Source of the DNA: Bugula neritina
Taxonomy: Eukaryota > Animalia > Bryozoa
DNA length: 64,000 nt
Reading direction: 5' to 3'
Assembly (NCBI GenBank): GCA_964035545.1
Contig: OZ037767.1
Coordinates: 26,986,628 to 27,050,627, forward strand
In this document: positions 39,748 to 51,882 of the stretch, piece after piece
How positions within the stretch are numbered: the first letter of the stretch is position 1
Layout of the letters: every line of letters starts with the position of its first letter
Translations under genes and position numbers: made by a program
Notes under the pieces: model-generated
Databases searched by the model: none
What the model was told of the DNA's origin: nothing
The model's input: the letters and a program-made list of their open reading frames with translations, nothing else

Positions 39748-42700
39748 CTACTGTATCGTTAACTCAACATCCTCTCTGTCTTACCTCTGAGTTTGCAAAT
39801 AAAATTTAAATACAATTTATGCATATTATAGCCTTTGCAACTTGTTGTGTGTATAAATAAATAATAATGATCAGTACTTTAGTTTGATAAAAACATACCC
39901 GTTGGTGAATTTTCACAATTGTTGGAGAGTGCTACGGTTCTAGAAACTTGATTTGCATCATTAGATCTTTTAGTAAAACTGTTACAATTGCGAAACAGCA
40001 TTGTGCACATTTCCTTTCTGCAAAACAGTTACAGTCATTCTGTTAAACTAAAACTCAACTTTTCCTATAAGTCATAGACAAAATATACATGAACAAACAT
40101 TAAACAACACTTAAGGTAAATGCAAGTAAATACTGTAGATGGGATATAAAGCAATTTAAGTTCCAAATAGAACGTGAGGTAAAATACTCAACTACAACAT
40201 TTTTATATTTTAATCTGGTACTTAAAATTGACGAGAGAATGTGTATGCATGCGTGCGTGTGTGCGTGTGCGTGTTGTATGATTGTGGGACCATTGAGTAA
40301 TGAAATAGTAATGAAATCACAGCTTTTAAAGTACTGGAAAAAGGGTTTTGTAATAACTTCGAATCTAAAACAAATGTGGAAGAACTTAACCCATTTAAAA
40401 AAAACTGATAACCTTACAGCTATAACTAATTACTGACCTGTACTGAGCGTTCATTCCTACGTAGAGCAGAGGGTTCAGCGTGAATGAGAGCTTTGCAAAG
40501 AATGCAGCTGACGAAAGGAGAATTGATGAAAGAGACTGTGGATAAATTGTAGCCCACACACTTATGATTCCGTATGGAGTCCAGGCCAAAAGGTAAAAGA
40601 CTACAACATACTTGTAATGTACTTTTATTAAGTTTATTGATTTTTTTTTCTAATGTAACATTGCATAATGCAGAACTTACGATGGTATTTTATTGCTACA
40701 ATATTTTATTACAATATTATTATTGCAGTCACCAGGTTACCGGTAGGCCCTGTGGTGCAATGGTTAGAGAGCCTGCTTGAGAGCCGGAGGTCTCAGGTTC
40801 GAATCCCAGTGGAGGCAAAATATTTAAATAATCATATTATATTATATTAATGTACAAAGTACAAGAGTCATATAAGTCTATATTATTATATTACTGTACC
40901 TATATATTATCTTTGGCAGTAATTAGGAAATGCTGAAGTGTTTAACATTGATATGATGAGATGTAAGAAATTCAGAGTAGTATCAATAACTGTTCCATTA
41001 AACCATTTAGTTCAAGTATTTTAGAATATGTACCGCATGTATGTACTGCTGAAAGATCTGATCAAAAATAATAATTATTCAATAAAGCAATAATCACTAG
41101 CCAGACCTTTAGAATAGAACATTTTCCTGGCCAATTCCAATTCTCTTTTTACATACTGCCTATCTTTTCCCTTTACAACTGCTCCGCTAACCTAAAAGAG
41201 TTGCAAAAACTTCAAAATTCCTACATATACTGCTTTTTGGTTTGCGGACAATTATTATATAATAATGCCTGCATAGATACTAACCATATGCTTTATACTA
41301 TAACATATTGTAGGGCGCATTTGTTAAAGTAAACTTTTATAATACCTTATAACACTGTGCTATATACCAACAAGCAATTTTGTTTATGCACTTTATTAGT
41401 GATCACCTTTCACCACCATGCTCTGATTGAGTGAGTGGTAAGAACTTTATAATTAAAAACACAAATATAAAAGAAACTATAACTTTCTGTTCATTTACTG
41501 CTAGAGATCACGTAACAGAGTTTAAAAGGAACTTACAATTTTAAAAATGACAACGTTGGTAGCAGTGATAATTATGCCTGGAATGATGAACACTGTGACA
41601 AAAATGGTGATATTATAGACTTTGTGTGCAGCAGATCTGCTAAACCAGTCAATTGAACACGAGACTCTTCCTGCGACTGTATAACTTTGGAAACCTGCAA
41701 CATGCTACACTCATTGAGGTTTTGCTACATGCAATACTCAGTAAGGTTTTGCTACATGCAATACTCAGTAAGGTTTTGCTACATGCAATACTCAGTAAGG
41801 TTTTGCTACATGCAATACTCAGTAAGGTTTTGCTACATGCAATACTCAGTAAGGTTTTGCTACATGCAATACTCAGTAAGGTTTTGCTACATCTTGTGAT
41901 GTGTAGACAACAACTGTAAACTTACAACTTATATTCACGCTTTGAAGCGTATAGGTAAATGTATCACACTTACACTGAAATGACCTCCAACTAGGTAAAG
42001 CAATGGCAGATTTATAGTGAAAAACTTTTAACAGTCATTTATGCATCTGATACTGAGGTTTGTTTTACCTTACTAAAATATTCCCAAGTACTTTTGCAGC
42101 TCACTTTCAGTTATATAATAATTATTATTCGGTTATATAACACATTTCAACAGATGACTACTGTCTAACTAAAAATGAGATGCAATATATTTAACCCATG
42201 CATTCAATTGAACATTTATAAAAATTTTGAGCTTTGATATGTAAACATTATTCTTTTTCCTTTATCTTATAATCGGATGACACTAATGTTTAGTTATTAT
42301 GCTTATCGAATAAACAATAATGACTATGGCTCCTATAATGCAAATAACTACAATTATTCCAATAGTATGTTAATGTTGATTTCAGTTAAAACTCCTCATA
42401 AAGTATTATTAAATTATTCAATGCTTTACTTGTTTTGTGCTTCAGCATTTTTGAATACATCAGGTTATATATGACTTGATGTGAGTTTAAAAACCACTTT
42501 AGTTTTATGTTCTTACATTGCAAATTTTGTCTAAAATAATTTAGGAACTTTAAAGCTTTGATATTTGAAAAAACTCATACTCCTTATAACTACCACAACC
42601 TTTGCCAAAACTCATTAAGGCCATTATTTCATGCAAGCCATTGCTTTTGCCACAAACATATTTTGCTAGCATGACTAAATATTTTTAGTGTTATACAGAA

Positions 42701-44618
42701 GTGATTGCAACCAAATATTTTTTCTAATTTCTCTGTGGCTTGATTTACCAGCCTAACGCAGCAAGCGTTATGCTCTGCCATGGCTCTTCATACAATTAAA
42801 GACCACAAATCTTCTTTTATTTAAGGTGCTCATTTGCAATAATTAAAAGCTTGATATGAGAAATATTACAGCATTTTAAAAAGAGTTGAACAAAGCTTGC
42901 ATATTTCCACCCAACTAAACAATTACATATAAACTTTGTTTTTTTAGTTTTCTTTAAATAGAGCAACATTGCAACAACATGCAACATGAGCAACAATTAG
43001 AATTGTAGGAAATGGTTCCCCCTCATACCCTATAACTTCTTAAATGCTAAATCAATATTTTAACAGGGGGGTGTATTGTCAATATAGCAGAAGTTACAAC
43101 TACAGCGTATGGAATATAATAATGCTATACTGTCACCTACCAAATTGAGGTAGGATGGCCCAAAGAAAGCCATACACCCAGCATACTACTTGTGCTATAT
43201 AGACGTGCGCTGTAATTTTCTTTTTATTAGCTACAGACCACTGGATATGCGTCATGGTGTACCATCTCTCCAATGAGATGGTACAGAGATGTGCAATCGA
43301 TGTTGTACCACACCAAAGCATTATTATGCCATGTGCCAAACACCCTGCAATATTCACATTTGAGATTAAAACTCACACTCCATTTCAGTATTCTTTAATA
43401 TTTGTAGTGAGATACACACTTTTATATACTACCAATAATAAATGATTTATATTTAAAGCTATTTTTAAAAGATGATGCACGAGAGGTTTAATCACATGAC
43501 CTCATGTTAATATTTAAATACAGTTCAACACAAGATAGAGCAGAAAAATTGAGATGAGTGGTCTTATACTGTAAGTAAGTAACTAGTAAAATAATGCATG
43601 TGTCAAAAACAACTAGTGTAGGCAAACTAAGCAACATATTGAACAGCATAGAAAACACTGATTATAGTAAAAAAAGAAAATGTCATTATATACTGTAACT
43701 GTGAAACGAATAAAGACTTAATCCATTTAAAATTATATGAAATGAAATAATTTTATTATAAGAATTTAATTGAAAATCATGTGTCAAAATAATAAAAAGA
43801 AATATTTGAATATGGTATTTCTGTAAGCTAAGCTAAATAAATGTTGAGTGCCTACAGCTTATAACATAATTAGAAAATTGCAAAAACAAAATTTCTCAGA
43901 AAAAAGTATGTTAGAGAAACAAACTTTACCAAAATTTACCTACCAGTTCTGGAAAACACCCATCTGTGGTAGAAACAGTTGACAGAGAACATGGTACCTC
44001 CCAAGGCAGCCATTACTCCGTCACTCAAAGCTAGACTTCTCAGCAGATAGGTAACTCTCGACTGGATGCGCTTTTTGCTTGCTTTTGTAAACAACACTAT
44101 TACACAGATATTGACAAAAACACCCACTAGTGTCAGCAGCCCCATCAATGAACCTAAAAGCAGCACCATGCATGTGCAGTAGAGTTTCAAAGGAACAGCT
44201 ACTGCTAGTTATAGGATGAAGAAAATTTGTCTTACAGCACTTCACCAATACTTTTTGCACATAACTTTACAACTTTGTCTTAAATTAACACTTTAAAAAG
44301 GAATTATATAGAAATTTGAGTTTTTTTTAAATGAGTTGATTGACATGTAAAATAAAAATGTGTTGTTGGTAGAACTGGTTTTAACAATAATGCTGTAAAA
44401 CATTTTGATTATAGAAGTTGGAAAAACCAACTTTCAGGCATTGATAACTACCATGCAGCAGTTTTAAATTAATAACACATTATGTTTCATAACAAGCGTA
44501 CGTAGTGAATAGAAAACTTACCCAGCACATAATGTGCGTAAAATTCTTCAGCGGTTATCTCTCCTTCTAGAGGGAAAGAATTAAAAGCAGAAGTAGAGTT
44601 ATTGAATGAAGTAGACAT
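39748..44618 (-). CDS. Opsin, copy A (355 aa; K296 present, A181, H113, NAQ motif; xenopsin/c-type-like, clade uncertain)
   Basis: Exons 44522-44618, 43944-44153, 43141-43344, 41537-41694, 41107-41191, 40438-40600, 39899-40017, 39748-39779. TM2 SLALSD, C110, ERW, ECL2 YTVAGRVSCSIDW, TM6 AWTPY, TM7 FFAKLSFTLNPLLYVGMNAQYR. Confidence 0.92.
40746..40817 (+). mobile_element. tRNA-derived SINE head / tRNA pseudogene in an opsin A intron
   Basis: TGGTGCAATGGTTAG A box and GGTTCGAATCCC B box, but the anticodon and acceptor stems pair poorly. Absent from the paralogous intron of opsin B. Confidence 0.65.
41700..41892. repeat. 27-bp minisatellite (TTTTGCTACATGCAATACTCAGTAAGG) x~7
   Basis: Abuts the acceptor of opsin A exon 4; single unit at the same place in opsin B (~49129-49159). 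Confidence 0.95.
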
Positions 44619-46448: not shown

Positions 46449-49400
46449 CTACTGTATGGTTAACTCAACACCATCTCTATCTAACCTTTGAATTTCCAAA
46501 TAAAATTTCTATACAATTTATACATATTATAGCCTTTGCAACTTGTAGTGTGTATAAATCAATAATAATGATTAGTACTTTATTTTGATGACAACATACC
46601 CAATGGCGTGCATTCATAAATGGTGGAAAGTTCTACAGGTCTAGAAACTTGATTTGCATTGCTTGATCTGTTAGTAAAACTGTTACAATCAGAACACAGC
46701 ATTGTATACATTTCCTTTCTGCAAAACAGAGTCGTTCTGTTAAAAATTTCTTATAAATTATAAATAAAATATATACGAGAAAGCATTAAATAATACAACA
46801 TGAATGCAAATAGTAAGATGTGATATAATGTAATTTAATTTTTAAATATATCTAGAACTTTGAAATACTTAACTACAATCCTTTTATATTTAAATCTGGT
46901 GTTTAAAAATGTGTGTGTGTTTTTGGTGTGTGTTTTTGGTGTGTGTGTGTGTGTGTTTGGTGTGTGTGTGTTTGGTGTGTGTGTGTTTAATTGGTGTGTG
47001 TCTGTGTGGTGTGTGTGTGTGTGTTTGGTGTGTGTGTGTGTTTTTGGTGTGTGTGTGTTTTTGGTGTGTGTGTTTTTGGTGTGTGTGTGTTTGGTGTGTG
47101 TTTGGTGTGTGTTTGGTATGTGTGTGTTTGGTGTGTGTGTGTGTATTGTTATAGGATTGTGGAACAAGTGTAATTTAATTATCTGGAGTAAAGACATAGC
47201 AGCTTTCAAAGTGCTGAAAAGTTTTGTGATAACTTTGAATTTAAAGCAAATGTAAGCTTCATGGAACTCGACTTACTTTCTTACAGCTATAACTAATTAC
47301 TGACCTGTACTGAGCGCTCATTCCTACGTAGAGCAGAGGGTTCAGCGTAAATGAGAGCTTTGCAAAGAATGCGGTTGACGAAAGAAGAACTGGTGGGAGA
47401 GACTGTGGGTAAATAGTAGTCCACACACTTATGATTCCATATGGAGTCCAGGCCAAAAGGTAAAAAACTACAACATACTTTTAATGTATTCTTACCAAGT
47501 TTATTGATGCTTTCTTTAGTGTAGCATAATATAATGTAAAACTTATGACTGTTTTTTTAATAGTGCATACAATATTATTATATTATAATACATTAGGCTA
47601 CAAAGTTTAAAAGGCACATAAAACTATTATATAGTATACTTTTTTGGCAGCTAAGTCAAATACACAATTTTGTAATTCTGGCTAGATACATTGTATACTA
47701 GTACTAACCAATACTTAAATGAACTTATGATTTATGTGCTAATAATTAGTAATAATAATCTAGATAATATAGTTAGCAAAATTTGCGTTATATGAGCCAA
47801 GCTTGTACATGCCATCAGACAGTAAATAATTTTGTGAAAATTGTCAAATATTTTTGAAAGTTTTCTTCTTTCTCCTAAAAGTCTTATATAGAGAAGACAA
47901 ATCCCACCTTTTAATTATTTTTACTTGCTCATTGAAATTGGTCGCCAATAATCGAAAGCTTTTGTTTAAAAGATAAAGTTTCTTTTTAAGGAATTTGATA
48001 GGATGAAAATTCATCAAATTTTTAAATACGCATATTCCAAATCAAGGTTGTTTCCCACTATTTAGTATTTTATCAGCATGGTATTGTTGCACAATAACAT
48101 TAACAATTGCATTACATGGTGTAATGTAAAACATTTCCACAAAATAGTAATAGTTATTATATTATTACTTATTATACAAATATATTACAAATATATCAAA
48201 ATATTGAATGTATATGCTTAAAGATTTAGCTAAAAATGATACTTAGTTAATAAATTAATAATCACCAGCCATACCTTTAGAATAGACCATTTTCCTGGCC
48301 AATTCCATTTCTCTTTTCACATACTTCTTATCTTTCCTCTTTACAACTGCTCCGCTAACCTAAAACAGTTGCAAAACCTCAAAAGCAATATACTGGCGTA
48401 ATAGCATTGACTTAACATAAAATTGTAGCTTTTAACATAACCTTATATTTAATAACATTCAGAGCAAAAACTGATCTTACTGTTTTATGCACGTGTTAAG
48501 CTAAATTACTCAAAATAAAACTGGTTTATACTAATCATAAAACTAGTTGAATTACAAAAAGTAACTTCTGTATAATATTTGATAAAATGTGCAATATAAG
48601 AAATAAGTTACAAGTTTTTTATTTGTAACATATTACTGTGAATGCAAAAGTTTCGCTATGAAGTTTTACATTCTTACTTATATTGCCTTTTGCTTTATAA
48701 TATAGTGCTTGCATAGATATTAACCATCTACTTTATATTGTAACATATTGCTTAAAACTTCACATCTTCTAACCAATAATTACTTGCTGTATGGTTTTAG
48801 AGTAAACATCGAGACTACACACTGTTTTATATATAGGTAAAAAATGTATAATGATACTTTCTTGCTATATGCAAAAATTCAAAATTAATAAACTGGTATT
48901 TATAATTATAATTTGCTCTTCTTTTACTGTTAAAAATCAAGTGGCAATGTTTAAAGGAAACTTACAGTCTTAAAAATAATGATATTGGTAGCTGTAATAA
49001 TTATGCATGGAATGACGAAAGTGGTTACAAAAATGGTAATATTATAGGCTTTGTGTGCAGCAGATCTGCTAAACCAGTCAATTGAACAAGAGACTCTTCC
49101 TTCGACTGTGTAACTCTGGAAACCTGCAACATGCTACACTCATTGAGGTTTTGCTACAGGCTGTAGACAGCAACAGTAAACTGAAAATACCACCAATTAA
49201 GTAAAGTAGTGACAGATCTGTATTGAAACATTTTCAACAGCAGTTAATGCACTTGTTACTTGAGTTTAATTTACTTTTAACTTCAATATTTGACTTTTAC
49301 CTCACATTTCGGTTACATAATATAAATCATTCAGTTATATAACACTTTCCAACAGATAACCATTGGCTAACTGAAAATGAGATGCAATATTTTCAACTCA

Positions 49401-51882
49401 TTTAATTATATTTATAAAATTTTGAACTTTGGCATGTGACATTACTTCTTTTTCTTTTATTTAGTGTTGAATGACACAAAAGTGCCAAGGTTTAGTTTTT
49501 ATGCTAATTGAATAAATAATGACTATGACTCCTATAATACAAACAATTGTAATTATTTTAATGGTATATAAATGTTGATTTCAGTTAAAACTCCTTATAA
49601 AGCATGATTAAATTGGTCAATGTTTTACTATTTTTGTATTTCAGCATTTTTAAATATAAAAGCTGCTGTGACTTGCTTGGGGTTTAACAACTGGTTTAGT
49701 TTGGTGTTCTTGCATTGCAAGTCTTGTTTAAAATGCTTTACTGAAAAGTTTCGATATTTGAAATTCATACTCCTTATAACTGCCACAATCTTTGCCAAAA
49801 CTCATTAAGGCCATTATTTCATTGTTTTTGCTAAAAGCTATTAGATATTGCTAGCATGACTAAAGGTTTTTTTTAGTACTATACAGAAGTGATTTTAACC
49901 AAATATCTTTATTCTAATTTCTCCATAGCTGAATCTATTATACCAGTCTAACACAGCAAACGTTATGCTGGTCTAGCTCTTCATACATTCGAAGACCACA
50001 AATCTTCCTTTTTAATTTAGGTTTTCACTTGCAAAATTTAAAAGCTTGATGTGGGAAAGATTTATACTGTATGTTTTTTTTTATAGAAAGGGAGCAAAGC
50101 TAATAGATTAAATGCTGATGTATAAATTTTTTTCTTTGAATAAAATGATATGAACAACATTTCAACTTATAGGAAATGATTTCTCCTCATGCACTATAAG
50201 TTCTTAGATGTTAAATTAATATTATAACAGAGAGAGGCATTGCATTATTAATAACATAAATTGCTAATAATACTAGAACATATTGTTAAAACTACATGTA
50301 TGAACATTAATAATATTAGACTGTCACCTACCAAGTTGAGGTAGGATTGCCCAAAGAAAGCCATATACCCAGCATACTACTTGTGCTATGTAGACATGCG
50401 CTGTAATTTTCTTTTTATTAGCTACAGACCACTGGATATGCGTCATGGTGTACCATCTTTCCACTGAGATGGCACAGAGGTGTGCAATTGATGTTGTACC
50501 ACACCAAAACATTAACATGCCATGTGCCAAACAGCCTTCAATATTATCGTACATGAAATTAAAACTCACACTCCATTTCAGTACTTTTTAAATTATAAAT
50601 TGAAAAGTTATTGATGCCATGAGATCTAAAATTTCAAATACTATCATTTATAAAAAATTTATATTTAAAGCTATTTTTATAAAATGATACAAGAGAAATT
50701 CAGTTCATGTCATCAGGCGTCATGTCTAAATGTTAATATTCAAATACCTATAGCATGACGCAAGATTGAGTAATATTTCAACTGAGAAGAGTGGACTTAT
50801 ACTGTGTGTAAGTAATTAGTATAGTACTGTAAGTAGGTAACTAGTATAGTACTGTAAGTAAGTAGCTAGTGTAATACTGTATTTGTCAAAAACAACTAGT
50901 GTGGTCAAATTAAACAATATTATAAACCAGATAGAAAACACTGAATTTAGTAACAAAAGCTAATGTAATTATATAACTATAAGATAGAAAATATTGCTTA
51001 GAATAATATAGACCTACTCTAATAACTACATCTGCTTTATTAAAATTTTAATCGAAATCATGTGTTAAAATGATAAAAACTATTTTTGTGAGTTTAGAAA
51101 AGTAGACGTTGAGTGCCTACGGTGATAACAATAATAAAAATGCAAAAAACAATTTTCAAACAAAAATATTTTAGAAAAATAAGTATGATGAAAATTTACC
51201 CACCAGTTCTGGAGAACACCCATCTGTGGTAGAAACAGTTGACAGAGAACATGGTACCTCCCAAGGCAGCCATTACTCCGTCACTCACAGCTAGACTTCT
51301 TAGCAGATAGGTAACTCTTGACTGGATGTGGGTTTTGCTTGCTTTTGTAAACAACACTATTACACAGATATTGACAAAATCACCAACTGGTGTCAGCAGC
51401 CCCATCACTGATCCTAAAAGCAGCACCATAAGCTCAGTGTCAAATGTTCAGTTACTGCTAGTTTCAAAAACAAAATAGTTTGTGTCGAAACCTTTCCACA
51501 ATATAATATGTCTTGTACATATAATAAATTTGTCTTAAAAGTGAACTTTTAAAGAAAGAAATTATATATAAACTTTTGCCACTTTTTCAAATAAGATAAA
51601 TAATGTTCTTAATATGTAAGGTAATAACATGCATTTATGTTTTTAACAGGCCACTTTTTTAAAAAGTTTGAAAATTTTTGATAGAAATTGAAAATAATCT
51701 TTATTTAAATGTAGATATTGAAAACAGTTTTCAAAGTAATCAAAACATTATGCTAAATTGCAAGCATAGTGAATAAAATACTTACCCAGCACGTAATGTG
51801 CATAAAACTCTTCAGCGGTTATCTCTCCTTCTAGAGGGAAAGAATTAAAAGCAGAAGTAGAGTTATTGAATGAAGTAGACAT
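46449..51882 (-). CDS. Opsin, copy B (355 aa; K296, E181, H113, SAQ motif)
   Basis: Exons 51786-51882, 51204-51413, 50332-50535, 48966-49123, 48275-48359, 47305-47467, 46600-46718, 46449-46480, all the same lengths as in copy A. ECL2 YTVEGRVSCSIDW, TM7 FFAKLSFTLNPLLYVGMSAQYR. Confidence 0.92.
46909..47145. repeat. Compound (GT)n/TTTGGTGTGT microsatellite
   Basis: Directly visible in opsin B intron 6. Confidence 0.95.

Follow-up and report, generated by a model that had tools for sequence, protein, structure and literature searches.

The window, by which we mean the whole stretch of 64,000 nucleotides (nt) of contig OZ037767.1 of the bryozoan Bugula neritina that was analysed, contains two adjoining opsin genes on the minus strand: copy A (44618-39879) and its twin, copy B (46580-51882). 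The subject of this report is position 181 (bovine rhodopsin numbering), where copy B encodes the counterion glutamate and copy A an alanine. A comparison of the two halves of the region showed a tandem duplication of a whole opsin gene, including the introns, which are 74-85% identical between the copies. The gene models were built from exon-sized reading frames, conservation between A and B, and splice signals. Each copy consists of seven exons, with lengths that are equal between A and B, and the spliced model encodes 351 amino acids (aa). All 12 introns of the two genes are of the GT-AG type, and no stop, frameshift or lost splice site was found over the seven exons of copy A. The uninterrupted open reading frame (ORF) of 355 aa that a preliminary description of this DNA had ascribed to copy A does not exist: no ORF of at least 150 aa is present within 40-51 kb, and the gene is therefore spliced; the frame is uninterrupted in the spliced model only.

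The exons of copy A (all on the minus strand) comprise: exon 1 (44522-44618), with the ATG at 44618, an N-terminus with NNS/NST glycosylation motifs and a GT donor; exon 2 (43944-44153), encoding transmembrane helices (TM) 1 and 2 with N55 and D83; exon 3 (43141-43344), encoding C110, H113, TM3, the ERW motif and TM4; exon 4 (41537-41694, first base 41694), encoding the second extracellular loop (ECL2) with A181, R183/184, S186 and C187, followed by TM5; exon 5 (41107-41191), encoding the third intracellular loop (ICL3) in a block that is 85% identical to copy B; exon 6 (40438-40600), encoding TM6 with AWTPY and TM7 with A292, K296, NPLLY and NAQ; and exon 7 (39879-40017), encoding helix 8 and the C-terminal tail up to a TAA stop. 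The corresponding exons of copy B, likewise on the minus strand, are 51882-51786, 51413-51204, 50535-50332, 49123-48966, 48359-48275, 47467-47305 and 46718-46580. Of the six introns, the first follows base one of codon 33, the second and third interrupt the Gly codon that immediately precedes C110 and the Gly174 codon, the fourth lies downstream of TM5, the fifth within ICL3 and the sixth in the Arg314 codon.

Exon 7 is the least certain: its frame is open in both A and B and it is weakly constrained (ratio of non-synonymous to synonymous differences per site, pN/pS, 0.68). The last intron is nevertheless supported, because the exon 6 donor (AG/GT) is common to all seven paralogues of the genome (see below) and the sequences beyond it are unrelated. 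For the same reason a read-through of exon 6 ending in '...SVISYSCKVISFF*' was rejected: the AG|GT donor is found there in 7/7 paralogues, which are unrelated beyond it. The first 25 nt of intron 6 (40413-40437 in A, 47280-47304 in B) are identical between the copies, with the rest of the introns at ~75-80%, and are absent from the other paralogues; this stretch might serve in splicing or belong to an alternative 3' end (it reads '...SVISYSCK'), and it is also covered by contigs of two public sequencing runs (X2 and X3, see below). Intron 6 of copy B further contains an imperfect TG/CA microsatellite of ~235 nt (46910-47144), which gives rise to spurious long ORFs on both strands.

The assignment to the opsins and the residue numbering were based on homology searches that were run exon by exon, with family profiles per exon compared to solved structures. 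Exons 2, 3, 4 and 6 match Pfam 7tm_1 in profile order (E 5e-7 to 9e-3), each exon alone staying below the whole-protein cut-off. Exon 6 (TM6-TM7) retrieves bovine rhodopsin first, at 6e-10 with its family profile versus 5e-4 for the first non-opsin; the AFFAK of copy A aligns to the bovine AFFAK with Lys296, the Lys column is invariant in 7/7 paralogues, and position 292 is Ala. For exon 2 (TM1-TM2) and exon 3 (TM3-TM4) squid rhodopsin is the top match, and the His that both copies have three residues after C110 is aligned with Tyr111 of squid, the equivalent of bovine 113. The exon 4 family profile has spider Rh1 and bovine rhodopsin on top, with rYtvEG.rvSCS aligned to RYVPEGSmTSC and RYIPEGmQCSC; this alignment identifies the Glu/Ala column as E181, the Cys as C187 and the Ser preceding it as S186. 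The spacing between the Glu/Ala column and Cys187 is one residue shorter than in bovine rhodopsin, so that the assignment of 181 rests on the alignment of the Y-x-x-E-G and S-C motifs and the Arg that follows falls at 183 or 184. Both copies contain C110, C187, ERW and NPLLY, and copy A also keeps K296, S186 and D83. By these features both copies are classed as animal (type II) opsins, for which pigment formation is a prediction.

The stretch 41660-41694 is the 5' end of copy A exon 4. The codon at the Glu181-homologous site is GCA (Ala) in copy A (41672-41674, minus strand; tgc on the plus strand) and GAA (Glu) in copy B (49101-49103, minus strand; ttc on the plus strand), and the peptides read FQSYTVAGRVSCSIDW and FQSYTVEGRVSCSIDW, respectively, with a shared ECL2 motif FQSYTV[A/E]GRVSCSIDW that differs only at 181. 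Sequence and translation hence bear out the difference in ECL2 that the preliminary description had reported, and its residues H113, A181, A292 and K296 for copy A stood up to alignment with solved opsins. Of its Phe at position 94, the non-acidic character was upheld and the identity was not: the placement of a one-residue gap in TM2 decides between F and M, and the exon 2 profile alignment contains no acidic residue in the outer half of TM2. Copy A was also rightly described as lacking a carboxylate at the recognised counterion sites 94, 113 and 181, and there is none at 292 either.

We then collected the relatives of the pair. The same assembly (216 Mb) contains five further paralogues, on C9 (6.77 Mb, L023, and 6.99 Mb, L024), C3 (5.00 Mb, L025), C6 (11.83 Mb, L026) and C2 (4.68 Mb, L027), all with K296 and E181 and all with the motif Y-x-x-E-G-[RA]-x-S-C-S. 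Glu181 is thus found in six of the seven paralogues of the genome, copy A being the exception. Five metagenome contigs, representing four distinct sequences that are 46-51% identical, also carry it, which brings the column to Glu in 10/10 other distinct family members found, some of them only 33-40% identical over exon 4. The three outgroups all have Glu, and parsimony places the E to A change on the A branch. Within the family members found, Ala181 is, as judged from this comparison, a derived state that is unique to copy A, and the earlier statement that the twin kept Glu181 and copy A lost it is in agreement with the Glu of the twin and of all other relatives found. Across the family position 113 is H, Y or N (His in L023 and L025, Tyr in L024 and L027), position 292 is A or G, S186 is conserved, as is E181 except in copy A, and D83 is invariant in 7/7 paralogues.

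Some further observations were made on these relatives. L024 has ERC in place of ERW and a strongly diverged ICL3 exon, and a relative of this exon on the metagenome contig L001 is better conserved and keeps ERW. The metagenome fragment P0003, encoded on L002, matches exon 3 of paralogue L023 without a difference where the two overlap, so that the same or a closely related animal is present in the Joint Genome Institute samples of L001 and L002. Two GC-rich metagenome matches (L033 and L034) were discarded as bacterial chance matches. A whole-library phmmer search with exon 3 recovered no named full-length opsin, only exon-sized fragments of other assemblies, and an ESM Atlas search with the same exon returned only generic fragment clusters of opsins and G-protein-coupled receptors. 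In a homologous-protein search the fragment P0008 matched only itself and copy A exon 4 matched nothing, which reflects the length window and the word index of that search and not absence.

Could the alanine be an error of assembly or consensus, or a rare allele of the sequenced individual? One public run (X1) contains the locus in the form of contigs and matches every copy A exon, yet its short-word contigs break at 41649 and resume at 41863, leaving 41650-41862 and with it the codon at 41672-41674 uncovered. The break can be ascribed to a tandem repeat with a 27-nt unit (7.3 copies, 97% matches; 41696-41892) at the 3' end of copy A intron 3, together with words shared with copy B. No conflicting letter was reported at the site in any of the three runs with matches, and the change is a transversion in unique sequence outside a homopolymer. 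The other two runs (X2 and X3, from the same study and labelled as the same organism) yielded only exon-like pieces that are 1-6% diverged and look like a sibling lineage. A contig of the diverged X2 lies somewhere in 41604-41767 with no difference listed, which is at most suggestive of Ala181 in that lineage too. No other copy or haplotig of copy A exon 4 is present in the assembly. Taken together, we regard an error or rare allele as highly improbable. With respect to exon 2, the X2/X3 piece (43952-44128) shows 11 differences from A and ~12 from B; these near-equal distances suggest a sibling lineage and possibly partial gene conversion between A and B in the genome. As to the repeat itself, it ends at the exon 4 acceptor AG (41695-41696), two bases from the first exon base; copy B has a single copy of the 27-nt sequence and no tandem repeat, and A and B do not differ over the 38 nt that directly precede exon 4. 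Each unit holds a branch-point-like CTTAC and a TGTAG, and the units could act as decoy acceptors.

The divergence of the copies was analysed over the whole coding sequence and over the 263 codons that could be aligned to the outgroups. The copies differ in 49/351 residues (86% identical), with a synonymous divergence (dS) of 0.23 and a non-synonymous divergence (dN) of 0.069 over the whole coding sequence. The dN/dS between them, a calculation that the preliminary description had proposed, amounts to 0.30 for the whole coding sequence and 0.23 over the 263 codons. Changes were polarised by parsimony and branch lengths were derived from three taxa; dS to the outgroups is saturated, which precludes a dS estimate per branch. 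On the 263 codons the dN of the A branch (0.027-0.028) is close to that of the B branch (0.023-0.024), and the polarised non-synonymous/synonymous changes number 12/8 on A and 9/9 on B (Fisher P = 0.74). Compared with neutrality, the A branch gives a binomial P = 0.06 if changes are counted strictly and P = 0.003 if the ambiguous ones are divided up. Copy A breaks two invariant columns of the family (E181A and one Pro in the third extracellular loop) and copy B one (N310S). The other changes in the A lineage are conservative, two of them at positions of the retinal pocket, 118 (F to L) and 211, and no new acidic residue was gained by copy A in the helices or outer loops, as judged from the comparison of A and B and the polarised changes. 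The synonymous differences per site are uneven between exons (pS is 0.09 for exon 2, 0.37 for exon 4 and 0.14-0.18 for exons 1, 3 and 6, all on small counts), which would fit gene conversion in the 5' exons or an unusual history of exon 4.

These data speak against three further points of the preliminary description. Decay of copy A is disfavoured by its 12 intact splice sites, the absence of stops and frameshifts, an A-branch dN similar to that of the B branch and only two departures from invariant columns; by this evidence copy A appears to be constrained about as much as its twin, intact and not visibly decaying. An origin of the pair by a single substitution is not supported, considering the 49 residues that differ, pocket positions 118 and 211 included, nor is 'recently evolved' supported for a pair with a dS of ~0.23 and introns that are only 74-85% identical. 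As far as sequence divergence can tell, the pair can be called neither very young nor a system of one substitution.

An intact frame might still reflect a recent loss, with copy A no longer a working photoreceptor because it is silent, mis-spliced, unstable or light-independent. Such a reading would be in line with the expansion of the 27-nt repeat (7.3 copies) up to the exon 4 acceptor in copy A only, with the lack of an RNA run containing the gene among the public sequencing runs searched, with an A-branch dN/dS that is not significantly below 1 on strict counts, and with the E194Q pigment of Drosophila Rh1 (the equivalent of E181Q), which is unstable and causes photoreceptor degeneration (PMC4571949). 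It is countered by the seven exons free of stops, frameshifts and lost splice sites, by the 38 nt before exon 4 that are the same as in copy B, by an A-branch dN equal to that of the B branch and by the small number of departures from invariant columns (two in A versus one in B); moreover, opsins that are confined to larval eyes are easily missed in RNA data. We therefore consider a non-working copy A improbable.

What would the loss of Glu181 do to a working pigment? Stabilisation of the protonated Schiff base decides between visible and ultraviolet (UV) sensitivity. From the residues found across the family (H/Y/N113, A/G292, E181 and S186) we infer an arrangement in which E181 acts as the counterion through a network with S186 and water. 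In spider Rh1, S186 belongs to the E181 network, and with the E181Q mutation the Schiff-base pKa falls from 11.0 to 6.1 and the visible peak disappears at pH 7.4 (PMC6513861). The reading that we favour, to which we give somewhat less than an even chance, is that copy A is an intact, selected opsin paralogue of the Glu181 type in which the loss of E181 lowered the Schiff-base pKa and shifted the dark state towards the UV. In this scenario, a single A-to-C change (GAA to GCA) in copy A after the tandem duplication would have deprived the retinal Schiff base of the sole carboxylate on its extracellular side; the pKa would then fall by several units, as in the engineered E181Q mutants, and the dark state would be largely unprotonated at physiological pH and absorb in the UV/violet at ~360-380 nm, unless an anion from solution fills the vacated site. 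Copy B would stay a visible-light pigment, and one ancestral gene would have given rise to two sensitivities, spectral or ionic, with the other 48 differences adding tuning.

Several points weigh against this preferred reading. The ~0.5 M chloride in a marine animal may re-protonate the Schiff base. The codon itself lies in the gap of the X1 contigs, no RNA run with the gene was found among the public runs searched, and the A branch does not fall significantly short of neutrality when changes are counted strictly (P = 0.06). Besides, selection is averaged over the whole A branch, and a recent loss of function after E181A could go along with that average. Finally, the UV shift is not guaranteed, because the E194Q mutation of Drosophila Rh1 shifts the sensitivity by only 4 nm in vivo, possibly through compensation by physiological chloride (PMC4571949).

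In a second reading of a working copy A, a halide from solution occupies the pocket vacated by Glu181 (with R183/184, S186 and H113) and serves as the counterion, so that the pigment would absorb visible light in a chloride- and pH-dependent manner. In vertebrate LWS opsins the chloride site is His181/Lys184, and the Arg two residues after 181 in copy A aligns either to the second of these positions, bovine 184, or to spider 183. H113 and S186 are present as well, and the host is a bryozoan and hence probably marine. Precedents are available in the literature: His181 is part of the chloride site of vertebrate LWS opsin (PMC12824042), bovine E113Q and retinochrome E181Q regain visible absorbance with chloride, chloride is the native dark-state counterion of the coral ASO-II opsins, and Antho2a E292A still binds it with a dissociation constant of 12.7 mM (PMC12401545). 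However, copy A lacks Glu292, which the ASO-II opsins use to hold chloride and as the photoproduct's counterion; a free Arg or protonated His near the Schiff base could lower the pKa, as does R113 in the UV-sensitive Antho2e (PMC12401545); and spider Rh1 E181Q is almost devoid of a visible peak at pH 7.4 (PMC6513861). On balance we hold a halide counterion in copy A to be unlikely, though the main alternative. The more specific proposition that copy A is a bilaterian chloride-counterion opsin, based on Arg183/184, Ser186 and His113 and without the Glu292 helper of ASO-II, is a little more doubtful still; if true, a halide counterion would have arisen a second time, independently and at an evolutionarily young age, with the ancestor-like Glu181 state kept in the adjoining twin.

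A third reading of a working pigment is that Asp83, or a network of water and His113, already stabilises the protonated Schiff base and that E181A barely alters the spectrum. D83 is invariant in 7/7 paralogues, the crustacean Opn5b opsins, which are devoid of acids at 94, 113 and 181, are reported to use Asp83 (PMC12221356), and the 4 nm shift of Drosophila Rh1 E194Q (PMC4571949) would be in keeping with it. In Opn5b, however, the use of D83 goes together with a remodelled ECL2 (S186 deleted, Phe181), whereas ECL2 of copy A is otherwise unchanged and keeps S186, and the retention of Glu181 in every other family member found argues that Glu181 is needed. This reading is accordingly very improbable in our view.

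To our knowledge, moves of the counterion (from 181 to 113, 94 or 83, or to chloride) rank among the landmarks of opsin evolution and are known only from old, deeply diverged clades. Two adjoining genes that are 86% identical, one of them without the ancestral Glu181, would show such a loss caught soon after the event. The pair allows a direct test of a natural Glu181 loss with respect to absorbance maximum, Schiff-base pKa, anion dependence, bistability and G-protein activation, and could also reveal whether the 48 other differences compensate. Since bryozoan larvae are strongly phototactic, the pair may matter for larval behaviour.

Regarding the placement within the opsins, the closest solved structure is an r-type opsin for some exons and a c-type opsin for others. 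The NxQ tripeptide at 310-312 is involved in G-protein coupling; it reads NAQ in copy A, SAQ in copy B and NKK, NRT, NEQ or NKE in the other paralogues. The Ser of copy B (47311-47313, model codon 302) stands against Asn310 in the six other paralogues. For bryozoans, xenopsins are reported to be the only opsins retained (PMC10097855), and the NxQ tripeptide is a feature of xenopsins (PMC6805122). On these indirect grounds, the bryozoan host and the NxQ of copy A, the two copies are probably xenopsins. Xenopsins are also reported to have two conserved intron positions of their own (PMC7529461). Like copy A, the xenopsins of Bugula neritina, Tricellaria inopinata and Leptochiton asellus have NxQ at 310-312 and a multi-exon gene (PMC10097855, PMC6805122, PMC7529461). 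The Leptochiton asellus xenopsin, the one xenopsin with a reported counterion, uses Glu113 (PMC12221356), in contrast to the family described here with His, Tyr or Asn at 113 and Glu181. The C-terminal VxPx ciliary-targeting motif that is reported for some xenopsins is absent from the tails of both copies.

The combination of E181, a polar residue at 186 and no Glu113, which is the feature set of the Glu181-counterion opsins, is present in copy B and all other relatives and is broken in copy A by Ala181. The analogy to counterion-less opsins that had been drawn for copy A is apt, and four systems can be compared with it. The vertebrate LWS cone opsins share with copy A a non-acidic 181 and a basic residue around 184 in ECL2; they keep the Glu113 counterion, such that chloride only tunes the absorbance maximum, whereas copy A is without Glu113. 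The crustacean Opn5b opsins (e.g. Rimicaris RhOpn5) have, as copy A, no acid at 94, 113 or 181 and an Asp83 (PMC12221356); they differ in having Phe181, a lost S186 and a remodelled ECL2, where copy A keeps S186 and differs from its twin in ECL2 at 181 only. The coral ASO-II opsins (Antho2a/2c/2e) are wild-type pigments without an acid at 94, 113 and 181, like copy A, and include visible chloride-dependent as well as UV members (PMC12401545); they have a conserved Glu/Asp292 and no E/DRY, in contrast to the Ala292 and intact ERW of copy A, and their loss is clade-wide, in contrast to the present case of a single young paralogue without Glu181 beside a twin that has it. The closest counterparts in terms of the change itself are the engineered E181Q mutants of jumping-spider Rh1, amphioxus Go-rhodopsin and peropsin, and squid retinochrome, in which the same position is neutralised in a context without Glu113 and with S186 kept (PMC6513861, PMC12401545); compared with these, the change in copy A is natural, to Ala instead of Gln, in a constrained gene, and accompanied by Arg183/184 and His113. 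Judged from the genomic data, copy A is a young paralogue, otherwise well kept, with a real, derived and unique loss of its Glu181 counterion, and represents a further natural case of the known counterion-less opsins.

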